From Salpingoeca rosetta (lineage: Eukaryota; Protista; Choanoflagellata): a stretch of DNA of 64,000 bases. The translations under genes and the position numbers were made by a program. The stretch is from positions 803,084 through 867,083 of the forward strand of contig JAWQFM010000004.1 of the NCBI GenBank assembly GCA_033442325.1, in the 5' to 3' direction. Positions 58,477 through 64,000 of the stretch are shown here, piece after piece. The stretch's first letter is position 1. The number at the start of each line of letters is the position of its first letter. The notes below the pieces were generated by a model. It saw only the letters and a program-made list of their open reading frames with translations. It had not been told where the DNA came from and ran no database searches.

Positions 58477-60132
58477 TTACTGCTGCTTCTTGTTGTTGGA
58501 AGCAGTGGTGGTGGAGTCGTCGTCGCTGTGCAGCTCGGCAATCTCGTCCTTGACGGCGCTGATGGCCTCCGTGGCCTGCTGCAGGTTCTCCACAAGCTCC
58601 TCTGGCAGCTCAAGCTGGGTGCCGACCTGGAAGCGGCCGGGCCCAATGCACGAGTCGAGGCCGCCAAGCTCACGCGAGCGGCGGTACGCGGCCCAGATGG
58701 CGTCAGAGAAGACGGTGCGCATGCCGCCGCGCTCAAGCTGGTACAGCGCAGCCGCCGTAGTGCCGCCAGGGGAGGTGATGTCGTTCTTCAGCATCGACGG
58801 GTGCTCGCCAGAGGCCAGGGCCAGGTTGACCGCGCCGCGGACCGTGTGCAGCACGAGCTTGCGGGACACGTCGCGCGCAAAGCCCATGTGCACGCCGGCG
58901 TCAATCATGGCCTCGAACATGAGCTGGCACATGGCGGGCCCGCTGCCGGAGAGGGCGGTGGCCATATCCAGCATGCGCTCGTCGGAGAGCAGCACCTCTG
59001 CACCAAAGGCGCTGAGGAGCTCCTTGGCCTGGCGCCGCTGCTCCGGCGACACCTCCTGCGTAAACGTCCAGCTGGTGATGGATTCGTTGATGAGGGCGGG
59101 CGTGTTGGGCATGGCGCGCACGACACGCTTGACGCCGAGGCCCTCGCGGATCTGGCTCAGCGTGAAGCCGGCAGCAATGGACACGACCAGGCAGTCCTTG
59201 GAAATGGTGTCGCGGATGCTGTCAAAGACGAGCGCCATGGTCTGCGGCTTGACGGCGAGGATGAGAATGTCAGCGCCCTTGGCGGCAGAGGCGTTGTTTG
59301 CCGTGGTGAGGATGTGGAAGCGGTCCTTGAGGTAGGTGCGGCGGCCCGCGTTGGGGTCGCACGCCGTCACCTGCGTTGCCTCCACGGCACCGCCGTTGAC
59401 CATGCCGCCCATCATCGCCTCCGCCATCTTGCCGCTGCCCAGGAACACAATCTTCTTGTCCTTGAGCGCGACCGAGGGCTGGCGCTGCTTGACTTGCTCC
59501 TCGCCCTGGCTCTGCTGCTCGTTTTGCGCCTGCTTGCCGTCGTCGGGCACTTCTTCAACCACGGCCTCCGCGTTGGCGCTCTGCAGCGTCTTGCGACTTC
59601 TCCTCAGGGCGCACGCCGTTGTGTGCAGGAAGCGGGCGCTGGGCATGGTCGGGGGCCGGCTCAGCATCTGCGAGGGCGGGAATTTGGCCGCGTGGTAGCG
59701 CATGTCCGGGCGCGGGCGGGCCAGCGGCTGCTGCTTGAGCAGGCCGCGTGCCTTGAGCGACGCGCGTTTCGTCGCACTGCCAGCAGTGTTGCTGCTATTT
59801 CTGGGGGCTGCGGGTGCGGGTTCTGCGCGCATGAAGCGCGTCGACGTGTGCATCTGGCGGGCGGTGCAGGCGGTGGGAGGGCGCGACATGACCTCCGTCG
59901 GCGGGAATTTTGCCGCGTGGTAGCGCAGGTCTGGGCGGCCCGATGTCCTGCCGACGCGCATGGCGGCTGCGGACGACTTGTTCGCCGCAGAGCTGCCGCG
60001 CATGATGGTGGCCGGGGAGATGATCTTGGTGCGCGTGCGCGGTGCGGTCTGCGCGGCCGCGGCCGCAGCCCGGCTGGCTTGGGCACTGACGGACAGCGCT
60101 CTCCTTGTTGTTCGTGTCATGGGAGTGGCCAT
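58477..60132 (-). CDS. PYCR: pyrroline-5-carboxylate reductase with a ~220-aa N-terminal extension (intronless, 551 aa)
   Basis: KIVFLGSGKMAEAM (NADPH-binding), ADILILAVKPQ, VVSIAAG, VVRAMPNTPALI, DMATALSGSGPA and ITSPGGTTAAAL are the P5CR signature motifs. The extension is Arg/Ser/Ala-rich and nearly free of acidic residues, like a mitochondrial presequence. Confidence 0.95.
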   Translation of the reverse strand: MATPMTRTTRRALSVSAQASRAAAAAAQTAPRTRTKIISPATIMRGSSAANKSSAAAMRVGRTSGRPDLRYHAAKFPPTEVMSRPPTACTARQMHTSTRFMRAEPAPAAPRNSSNTAGSATKRASLKARGLLKQQPLARPRPDMRYHAAKFPPSQMLSRPPTMPSARFLHTTACALRRSRKTLQSANAEAVVEEVPDDGKQAQNEQQSQGEEQVKQRQPSVALKDKKIVFLGSGKMAEAMMGGMVNGGAVEATQVTACDPNAGRRTYLKDRFHILTTANNASAAKGADILILAVKPQTMALVFDSIRDTISKDCLVVSIAAGFTLSQIREGLGVKRVVRAMPNTPALINESITSWTFTQEVSPEQRRQAKELLSAFGAEVLLSDERMLDMATALSGSGPAMCQLMFEAMIDAGVHMGFARDVSRKLVLHTVRGAVNLALASGEHPSMLKNDITSPGGTTAAALYQLERGGMRTVFSDAIWAAYRRSRELGGLDSCIGPGRFQVGTQLELPEELVENLQQATEAISAVKDEIAELHSDDDSTTTASNNKKQQ

Positions 60133-60591
60133 CTTGTTGAGTAAGGGTGGGAGGGTATGTGTTGTTGTCGTTGTTGTTGTTGCTGGGGATCTGTTACTTC
60201 TGTTCTGTTCTAGTGAGGAGACTACACTGCAGTAATGTAATGCGACGTGGAAGGAAAGTGGTCACAGACAACTTGTGTGGAGAAGGGAGATTGGTTGACT
60301 TGAGATCGGATTGAGTTGGGAGTTTGAGATGAGAGAGGACAGGGCGAGAGGTGATGGGTGTGTGGCGTGATGATGTGTGGCGCAAAGTCTGATGATGATC
60401 TGAGAGGTAAATGGTGACTTTTCTGGGAAGGAAGCGAGCAAGGTTGATGGTGGTGGTGGTGCTGCTGCTGCTGTGGCCGCATGTCGTCGCTTGAAGCGCA
60501 GGTTGGTTGGTTGGTTGGTGGTGTTGCTCACATCTGCCACTTTCCATCGCATGTCCGTGATCGCAGAAACGAACCCAAACCAAGAACAGCG

Positions 60592-60736: not shown

Positions 60737-61377
60737 TGATGTGCGGGAAGTTTAAGGCGGTTTTGAAGAAAAACGTCATCGGGCACATGGCAAACCCATT
60801 TGAAGAAATTGCCGAATATTAGGAACGTCTTGAAAGAAGAAAATCTATTTCGGGCACGTGCAAAGCCCGGTCAAAACGGCGCACAAACACAAGCATGTAG
60901 AATACAACTTGTGGTGTATGATGGAGTCCGCGACACGCGACACTCAGAAGTATGTGTTTGTTTGCATTGTGTGGGTGTGTGCGGGTGTGCGGGTGTGTGT
61001 GTGTGTGGGTGTGTGGGTGTGTGGGTGTGTTTGCATGCGCGTCTCTGTCTCTCCCTGTCACTCACTCTCTCACTCACACACACACACTCTCTCTCGCTCT
61101 CTCTCCTCTGTCCGTCACAACCACACCACGACCTGCAACAAATTCATTAGATGTACATAATTGTAGAATTGTCGTTGTAACAAACGCGCAGGTGATGCGC
61201 AGGACATAATTAACCAAGCATGGGGTGGTTGAAAACGGAAAGTTGGCGCCACACACACACACTCTCGCACACTCACACACGCACACAAACGGACACAACA
61301 CATGCACACGCACACACTCACACACTCACACACACGCACACACACATATGCCGCATAGGTCAAATCAGTTAATGAAA

Positions 61378-64000
<2,623 letters not shown>

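Follow-up and report, generated by a model that had tools for sequence, protein, structure and literature searches.

A duplicated and conserved peptide module in the N-terminal leader of a choanoflagellate pyrroline-5-carboxylate reductase

Why does an enzyme of proline synthesis carry the same short peptide twice in a leader that is otherwise unalignable? The question is raised by a stretch of 64,000 nucleotides (hereafter, the window) from the choanoflagellate Salpingoeca rosetta (assembly GCA_033442325.1, contig JAWQFM010000004.1, positions 803,084 to 867,083 of the forward strand). In the window, a gene for pyrroline-5-carboxylate reductase (P5CR/ProC) is encoded on the minus strand. A first-pass annotation, made from the letters of the window, had noticed a duplicated Pro-Pro peptide in the N-terminal extension of the enzyme and had proposed that the peptide itself is under selection. 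It had also speculated that the two copies are tandem proline-responsive stalling or feedback modules, each followed by a cleavage site. I analyzed the two copies, their relatives in other choanoflagellates, and their transcription. As described below, the peptide is conserved between species at the amino acid level, and the favoured reading is that it would serve the recognition and processing of a long mitochondrial presequence. All coordinates below are positions in the window, and residue numbers refer to the protein of 551 amino acid residues (aa).

The duplicated module in the P5CR leader

The complete, intronless coding sequence of the gene, hereafter paralogue A, occupies 58477..60132 (minus strand) as a single uninterrupted open reading frame (ORF) of 551 aa plus the stop codon, in agreement with the Pfam search and with unspliced stranded RNA-seq reads. 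The product is P5CR, as both defining domains are present: the NADP Rossmann domain PF03807 at aa 227-322 (E 1.2e-18) and the P5CR dimerisation domain PF14748 at aa 385-489 (E 5.4e-35). Both fall in the C-terminal 330 residues, and no Pfam family was matched in the first ~221 residues. This N-terminal extension (aa 1-221; 59470..60132, minus strand) is further marked by its composition and by its predicted disorder.

It was found that the extension contains two copies of a 32-aa module, at aa 66-97 and aa 141-172, with an offset of exactly 75 codons. Copy 1 (RPDLRYHAAKFPP..SRPPT..ARQMHT) lies at 59842..59937 and copy 2 at 59617..59712, both on the minus strand, and their conserved cores are aa 66-78 (59899..59937) and aa 141-153 (59674..59712). 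A basic 43-aa linker between the copies (aa 98-140; 59713..59841, minus strand) aligns with nothing. The copies are identical at 20 of the 32 residues, and their DNA self-alignment has a score of 66, compared with 23.8 +/- 2.8 (maximum 32) when codons were shuffled, which puts the repeat far outside what chance would give. Thus, the first-pass observation of two copies 75 codons apart in a ~220-aa extension, placed at 59600-59937, is confirmed, and the interval covers both copies. All seven of the synonymous changes that it listed at conserved residues were recovered, while the count itself should be 8, since ACG/ACA at T96/T171 has to be added. Its statement that the flanks are unalignable also holds: upstream of, downstream of, and in between the copies, the similarity does not exceed that of shuffled sequences, at both the protein and the DNA level. 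By the same comparison, no trace of a tandem duplication of the whole 75-codon unit is detectable in the flanks.

Conservation of the peptide and history of the module

Is the module found in the P5CRs of other choanoflagellates? Two orthologues resemble paralogue A closely in the catalytic part: P0002 (464 aa; Logan assembly of run SRR24908159) is 87% identical and P0004 (477 aa; Barroeca monosierra) is 81% identical, and the P5CRs of Choanoeca flexa and C. perplexa are the next nearest at 55-57%. P0002 has an in-frame stop codon immediately before its first AUG, and B. monosierra has one 15 codons upstream of its first AUG with no AUG between them; thus, both leaders are complete. Each has one copy of the module in the same place, directly ahead of the acidic linker leading into the enzyme. 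The motif, which the first-pass annotation had proposed to look for in other protists, is therefore present in two orthologues.

The definition of the motif rests on four copies from three species (the two of S. rosetta A, that of P0002, and that of B. monosierra). Across these copies there are three invariant islands, R-x-D-[LM]-R-Y-H-A-A-K-[FY]-P-P (the core), R-P-P, and A-R-x-φ-H-T, and 11 contiguous core residues are invariant. The R-P-P island always follows five residues after the core, and A-R-x-φ-H-T follows after a further four to seven residues, the first of which is usually T. When the leaders of P0002 and B. monosierra were compared with S. rosetta excluded, their sole significant local similarity was anchored on the module (score 146 versus 39 +/- 7; z about 16).

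Does selection act on the peptide or on the nucleotides? By the Nei-Gojobori method, the 13-codon core (that of copy 2 in S. rosetta) has a nonsynonymous distance (dN) of 0.07 to B. monosierra with saturated synonymous sites (pS 0.76), compared with a dN of 1.13 in the other alignable leader columns and 0.153 in the catalytic domain. The GC content at third codon positions (GC3) is 0.87 in S. rosetta versus 0.41 in B. monosierra. Since the synonymous sites are saturated and GC3 differs so widely, a nucleotide-level effect cannot explain the conservation. Selection acts on the module peptide and not on the nucleotides. The first-pass annotation had rightly argued for such selection from the two copies alone, and the orthologues support it far better. 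The saturated synonymous sites, together with the near absence of antisense reads, led to the rejection of a nucleic acid element (RNA or DNA) or an antisense gene as the cause of the conservation.

It is hardly credible that the module has no function, so that the likeness of the copies would be a mere leftover of a recent internal duplication whose flanks were replaced by insertions and deletions. Over all 32 codons, omega between the copies is 0.56, which would suit such a leftover, and both copies use a common rare AAA codon as expected from common descent. However, omega in the core is only 0.08 (dN 0.034, dS 0.42), and the module has been kept in two other species with otherwise unalignable extensions and saturated synonymous sites. 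As for the AAA codon, it encodes the Lys residue before F-P-P (59908-59910 and 59683-59685, minus strand). In paralogue A, whose GC3 is 0.87, AAA accounts for 3 of the 25 Lys codons, and two of the three are in the modules. P0002 has AAG at this position of its module. The AAA codons of the two S. rosetta copies were probably inherited from the duplication. Another difference from the orthologues concerns their third proline (PPP), which is replaced by Thr ACG (59896-59898) in copy 1 and by Ser TCG (59671-59673) in copy 2 (both minus strand). As ACG and TCG are each one step from CCG, the triple proline may have been lost in parallel in the two copies.

S. rosetta has two P5CR paralogues, A and B. 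In the S. rosetta assembly that was searched (55.4 Mb), paralogue B (P0003, the NCBI S. rosetta P5CR of 433 aa) is encoded with 100% identity on another contig (G000:C17:568299-569597, plus strand; L014:1501-2799). A maximum-likelihood tree has the topology (B. monosierra,(P0002,(A,B))), in which the A+B grouping has support of 96/92 and the branch of B is longer. The grouping of A with B indicates a gene duplication inside the S. rosetta lineage, with the single module as the ancestral state. Copy 2 with its downstream flank (ALRRSRKT.QSA) is the positional orthologue of the single copies of P0002 and B. monosierra, and copy 1 with the 43-aa linker is an S. rosetta addition. The leader of paralogue B is shorter than that of A and lacks the core. 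It carries an R-H-T-S site and has kept R-x-M-H-T, in the form R-R-M-H-T. Homology of the B leader to the module was not accepted, as the similarity is not significant in DNA and weak in protein (z 2.9); the weak alignment suggests that the copy decayed in place. The core is also absent from the P5CR leaders of C. flexa and C. perplexa.

Two minor features may be added. A small block, ISPATIMR (aa 38-45; 59998..60021, minus strand), which includes a Ser-Pro, is common to the leaders of A and P0002 only. The S. rosetta assembly also has a weak third P5CR-like match (G000:C16:482327-482638, minus strand, locus L016; 38% identity over 105 aa, E 1e-13), which may be an exon of a distant paralogue.

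How widely is the module distributed? No third copy was found in the S. rosetta assembly, proline-pathway genes included, when a 177-aa and a 113-aa leader piece were searched against it. Likewise, a degenerate DNA pattern for YHAAKFPP, allowing up to 2 mismatches, found only the two known copies in the whole assembly. Thus, the other proline-pathway genes of this genome, in which the first-pass annotation had suggested looking for the motif, do not contain it. A hidden Markov model of the four copies matched only its own cluster among 1.84 billion protein representatives. Nothing further came from word-based queries of the leader or of a 161-aa P0002 segment, the latter chosen to pick up fragments, and two scans of metagenome contigs, one with the DNA pattern and one by alignment, found no relative. 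Structural look-alikes of aa 55-190 were only low-TM matches to disordered regions. These searches point to the module as an invention of one small craspedid clade, tied to P5CR alone.

Transcript, leader, and possible functions of the module

Are the modules transcribed, and does translation start upstream of them? In three stranded RNA-seq runs of 2026, reads are continuous from 58200 to about 60400-60550 with no splice joints. The reads are almost wholly in the orientation of the minus-strand mRNA, and the depth over the modules is similar to that over the enzyme part. Since paralogue B has no leader similarity, the leader reads cannot derive from B. In the catalytic part, the variant letters in the reads are those of paralogue B at 8 of 8 checkable positions, indicating that B mRNA is present; RNA editing and alleles were rejected, as the variants match cross-mapped B transcripts. 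Read depth drops between about 60390 and 60550, by which the 5′ leader was placed at 60133..60550 (minus strand). By read depth, one run suggests a main transcript start near 60390-60470, and another run suggests one farther upstream. From 60481 down, the first AUG encountered is the main one, at 60132, in the context AAGATGG. The start codon of the 551-aa protein is the first AUG of the main transcripts, lies upstream of both modules, and is likely the translation start. The first-pass annotation had considered a transcript or translation start downstream of the repeats, and both the transcript start and the first AUG lie upstream of them. Upstream AUGs at 60552, 60547, 60533, and 60482 (minus strand) open upstream ORFs of 96, 117, 1, and 86 codons, respectively. 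They are confined to longer, minor 5′ leaders and their ORFs are unrelated to the module; the one from 60552 is in the frame of the main ORF and terminates before it.

What kind of leader is it? The first 186 residues contain 34 K/R, 4 D/E, 40 S/T, and 36 A, and are followed by an acidic, Q-rich linker (aa 187-221). By these counts, aa 1-186 has the composition of a presequence, being N-terminal, basic, nearly acid-free, and rich in S, T, and A. AlphaFold2 (AF2), run with a 59-sequence alignment, gave pLDDT values above 90 for the enzyme domain, whereas aa 1-210 stayed under 50 except for isolated residues. The only helix within the leader is predicted at aa 172-186 with low confidence. The top helical hydrophobic moments are at aa 1-15, 56-67, 92-102, and 174-187. 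Docking of the module onto its own enzyme was rejected, as AF2 leaves aa 1-210 disordered and unpacked on the domain. All five choanoflagellate orthologues have an N-terminus resembling a mitochondrial targeting sequence (MTS), and in all five the basic region ends in an R..H-[ST] site just before the acidic or polar linker. The site takes the form R-x-φ-H-T in the S. rosetta clade and R-A-H-S-T or R-H-H-S-T in Choanoeca.

The first-pass annotation had pointed out that R-x-[LMF]-H-[TS] resembles mitochondrial processing sites, and by eye the sites fit published motifs of the matrix peptidases MPP and MIP to differing degrees. The known cleavage motifs are R-2 (xRx↓x(S/x)), R-3, and R-10, the last of which is that of the intermediate peptidase (Rx↓(F/L/I)xx(T/S/G)xxxx↓) (PMC3578813). 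By eye, putative site 2 of the A leader (A-R-F-L-H-T, aa 166-171; 59620..59637, minus strand) fits R-x↓(F/L/I)-x-x-(T/S/G) in full. Putative site 1 (A-R-Q-M-H-T, aa 91-96; 59845..59862, minus strand) and the site of P0002 have M at position 1, and that of B. monosierra is without T/S/G at position 4. The loose R-2 pattern is fitted by all the module sites.

From these features, I consider that the module may be a lineage-specific recognition and processing element, placed distally in a long mitochondrial presequence and duplicated in S. rosetta; I give this reading about an even chance. The first ~186 residues would behave as a very long presequence, and a mitochondrial location of P5CR-A is suggested by the composition and the motif patterns. 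The last island, A-R-x-φ-H-T, would be a processing site for MPP and MIP. The first two islands would be the docking site of a specific factor acting on the precursor ahead of its cleavage or in the course of it; candidates are an import receptor, a chaperone, and the peptidase. Both the cleavage and the module-specific binder are inferred here from sequence features. The ancestor had one module. Paralogue A copied it 75 codons upstream and retained both copies under purifying selection, so that its two recognition and cleavage units might allow stepwise removal of the presequence. Paralogue B appears to have let the core decay. Three precedents support this scheme. MPP scans downstream of a strong presequence and can cut a precursor twice, as at the internal sites of Arg5,6 and Atp25 (PMC8734313). 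Specific presequences bind specific factors, such as TOMM34 (PMC12306757), and TOMM34/Cns1 is recruited by the Oxa1 presequence (PMC12306757, PMC12895284). Long presequences can hold more than one functional element, as does N53 of human glutamate dehydrogenase (GDH) with its two helices (PMC5095901).

Several points weigh against this reading. A length of 170-186 aa is unusual for a presequence, and generic recognition by Tom20 or MPP does not need 11 invariant contiguous residues. The conserved core lies outside the most amphipathic windows of the extension; strict conservation of a core that is not especially amphipathic implies a specific binder. Only copy 2 satisfies R-10 in full. Paralogue B and the Choanoeca P5CRs manage without the core. 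Moreover, the core is known from three species only, and the definition of the motif is accordingly thin.

Could the module be a short linear motif that is retained on the mature or precursor protein and has no part in targeting or processing? In this case, it would bind a lineage-specific regulator, scaffold, kinase, or protease, and thereby affect the activity, stability, or sub-organellar location of P5CR-A. Contiguous invariant residues within a disordered region are typical of docking motifs, and a core with no special amphipathicity would suit such a role. The contrasting fates of the motif after the gene duplication, doubled in A and lost from B, fit regulatory subfunctionalisation. This is the main rival of the presequence reading, yet it seems rather unlikely. 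The module is embedded in a presequence-like composition directly upstream of a processing-like site, and the absence of any other carrier in the genome or among the 1.84 billion representatives means that it is not a general docking motif. It showed no match by eye to the consensus patterns of PTS2, SH3 (class I and II), WW, EVH1, or 14-3-3 ligands, no scan being run, and AF2 shows no intramolecular docking.

The processing-like sites raise a further possibility, that P5CR-A is made as a small polyprotein, from which cuts at both R-x-φ-H-T sites would free one or two conserved peptides of up to ~75 aa, with a function of their own in the matrix and a dose doubled by the duplication. Each module does end in a processing-like site, MPP can cut composite precursors internally (PMC8734313), and the peptide is conserved even though cleaved presequences normally drift freely. 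Nevertheless, I regard a polyprotein as very improbable: the peptide is predicted to be disordered, conservation covers just 32 of the 75 residues from one site to the next, and no free-standing homologue was found among the 1.84 billion representatives.

Does the module act as a nascent chain, as was first speculated? With the core in the exit tunnel and the PP and RPP motifs in place, the ribosome might pause. A pause could give the exposed N-terminal signal time to reach mitochondria, as for the polyproline of TIM50, or could tune P5CR synthesis to proline, prolyl-tRNA, eIF5A, or another metabolite, as for the MTO1 region of CGS1. In favour of this, it is the peptide that is conserved, over a length that the tunnel could hold; none of the four copies departs from [FY]-P-P or R-P-P, and in the orthologues the former is extended to PPP. 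The modules are made ~77 and ~152 residues into the protein, when the N-terminal signal would already be outside the ribosome. Precedents are found in TIM50 (PMC7413667, PMC11551009) and CGS1 MTO1 (PMC3083191), the latter being particularly close. On the other hand, the third proline has been lost in both S. rosetta copies (F-P-P-[T/S], R-P-P-T), which would make a stall weaker, as three or more consecutive prolines are expected of a polyproline, eIF5A-dependent pause site. Moreover, A-R-x-φ-H-T is not yet made when the ribosome is on the PP codons, yet it is conserved in the same unit. A stall under scarce prolyl-tRNA would lower P5CR, which would be the wrong direction for feedback. RNA-seq reads show no pile-up of ends at the modules, which is a weak test. 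The core is absent from paralogue B and Choanoeca, and the motif is absent from other proline-pathway genes. Taken together, a pausing role of any kind seems improbable. A proline-responsive arrest in particular is neither supported nor refuted by these data, and nothing in them points to the sensing of proline.

Outside the leader, paralogue A has a C-terminal extension (aa 490-551; 58480..58665, minus strand), which is kept among choanoflagellate P5CRs and has a confident AF2 helix at aa 511-541. The pattern common to these extensions is GGLDS.[IV]GPGR...LELPEELVENLQQ.TE.... The region upstream of paralogue A (60950-61800) is intergenic and rich in (GT)n/(CA)n microsatellites, which give rise to many spurious ORFs on both strands.

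Comparison with known systems

Presequences are usually described as consensus-free and free to drift, and no consensus other than the cleavage motif is known for them, although recent work points to protein-specific codes in some. Against this background, what appears new in P5CR-A is a presequence-like leader with a sequence-specific, duplicated element. A 32-residue stretch has stayed constant across species despite a reshuffled codon usage, and was doubled in A and dropped in B. This amounts to a natural experiment, in a genetically tractable choanoflagellate, on specific information in a leader, whether for factor binding, stepwise processing, or pausing.

The presequence of Neurospora ATP synthase subunit 9 is cut twice by MPP. 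Like this presequence and those of GDH N53, Arg5,6, and Atp25, the P5CR-A leader is basic and acid-poor, with serial processing-like R-x-φ sites; like other long presequences, it goes far beyond the usual 20-60 aa. Unlike them, its unit is a sequence-specific 32-aa module that is found across species and has been duplicated whole. In the TOMM34/Cns1-Oxa1 system, portions of a long presequence are factor-binding sites that set import efficiency (PMC12306757, PMC12895284), and the P5CR module may be similar in this respect. Unlike that system, the P5CR motif is confined to one enzyme in one small choanoflagellate clade.

Among arrest peptides, the fungal arginine attenuator peptide and TnaC are encoded in separate upstream or leader ORFs, and their metabolite-dependent arrest has been shown. 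The P5CR module resembles them in its peptide-level conservation and its tie to an amino acid pathway, and differs in lying within the main ORF. With arrest peptides in general it shares selection on the amino acids and a position in the transcript downstream of the start codon. In TIM50, seven prolines ~60 aa after the MTS stall ribosomes and promote mRNA localisation (PMC7413667, PMC11551009). The prolines of the P5CR module similarly follow an MTS-like N-terminus at a distance of tens of residues. However, those of TIM50 are seven consecutive residues, whereas the S. rosetta copies have PP and RPP, with a conservation reaching well past the prolines. In Arabidopsis CGS1, a biosynthetic enzyme, the MTO1 region is a conserved segment of 14 aa in the N-terminal portion of the main ORF, and it arrests translation when S-adenosylmethionine (AdoMet) is sensed (PMC3083191). 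The two systems have in common a short peptide, conserved at the amino acid level, in a dispensable N-terminal part of a biosynthesis enzyme near a targeting peptide, which in P5CR is a putative one. Elongation arrest has been shown for CGS1; the P5CR module, known by its sequence, comes in two copies with a processing-like site at the end of each. Should the module indeed cause pausing, proline metabolism would be connected to the control of translation in a close relative of animals, and P5CR-A would offer a holozoan match for the MTO1 system of plant CGS1.

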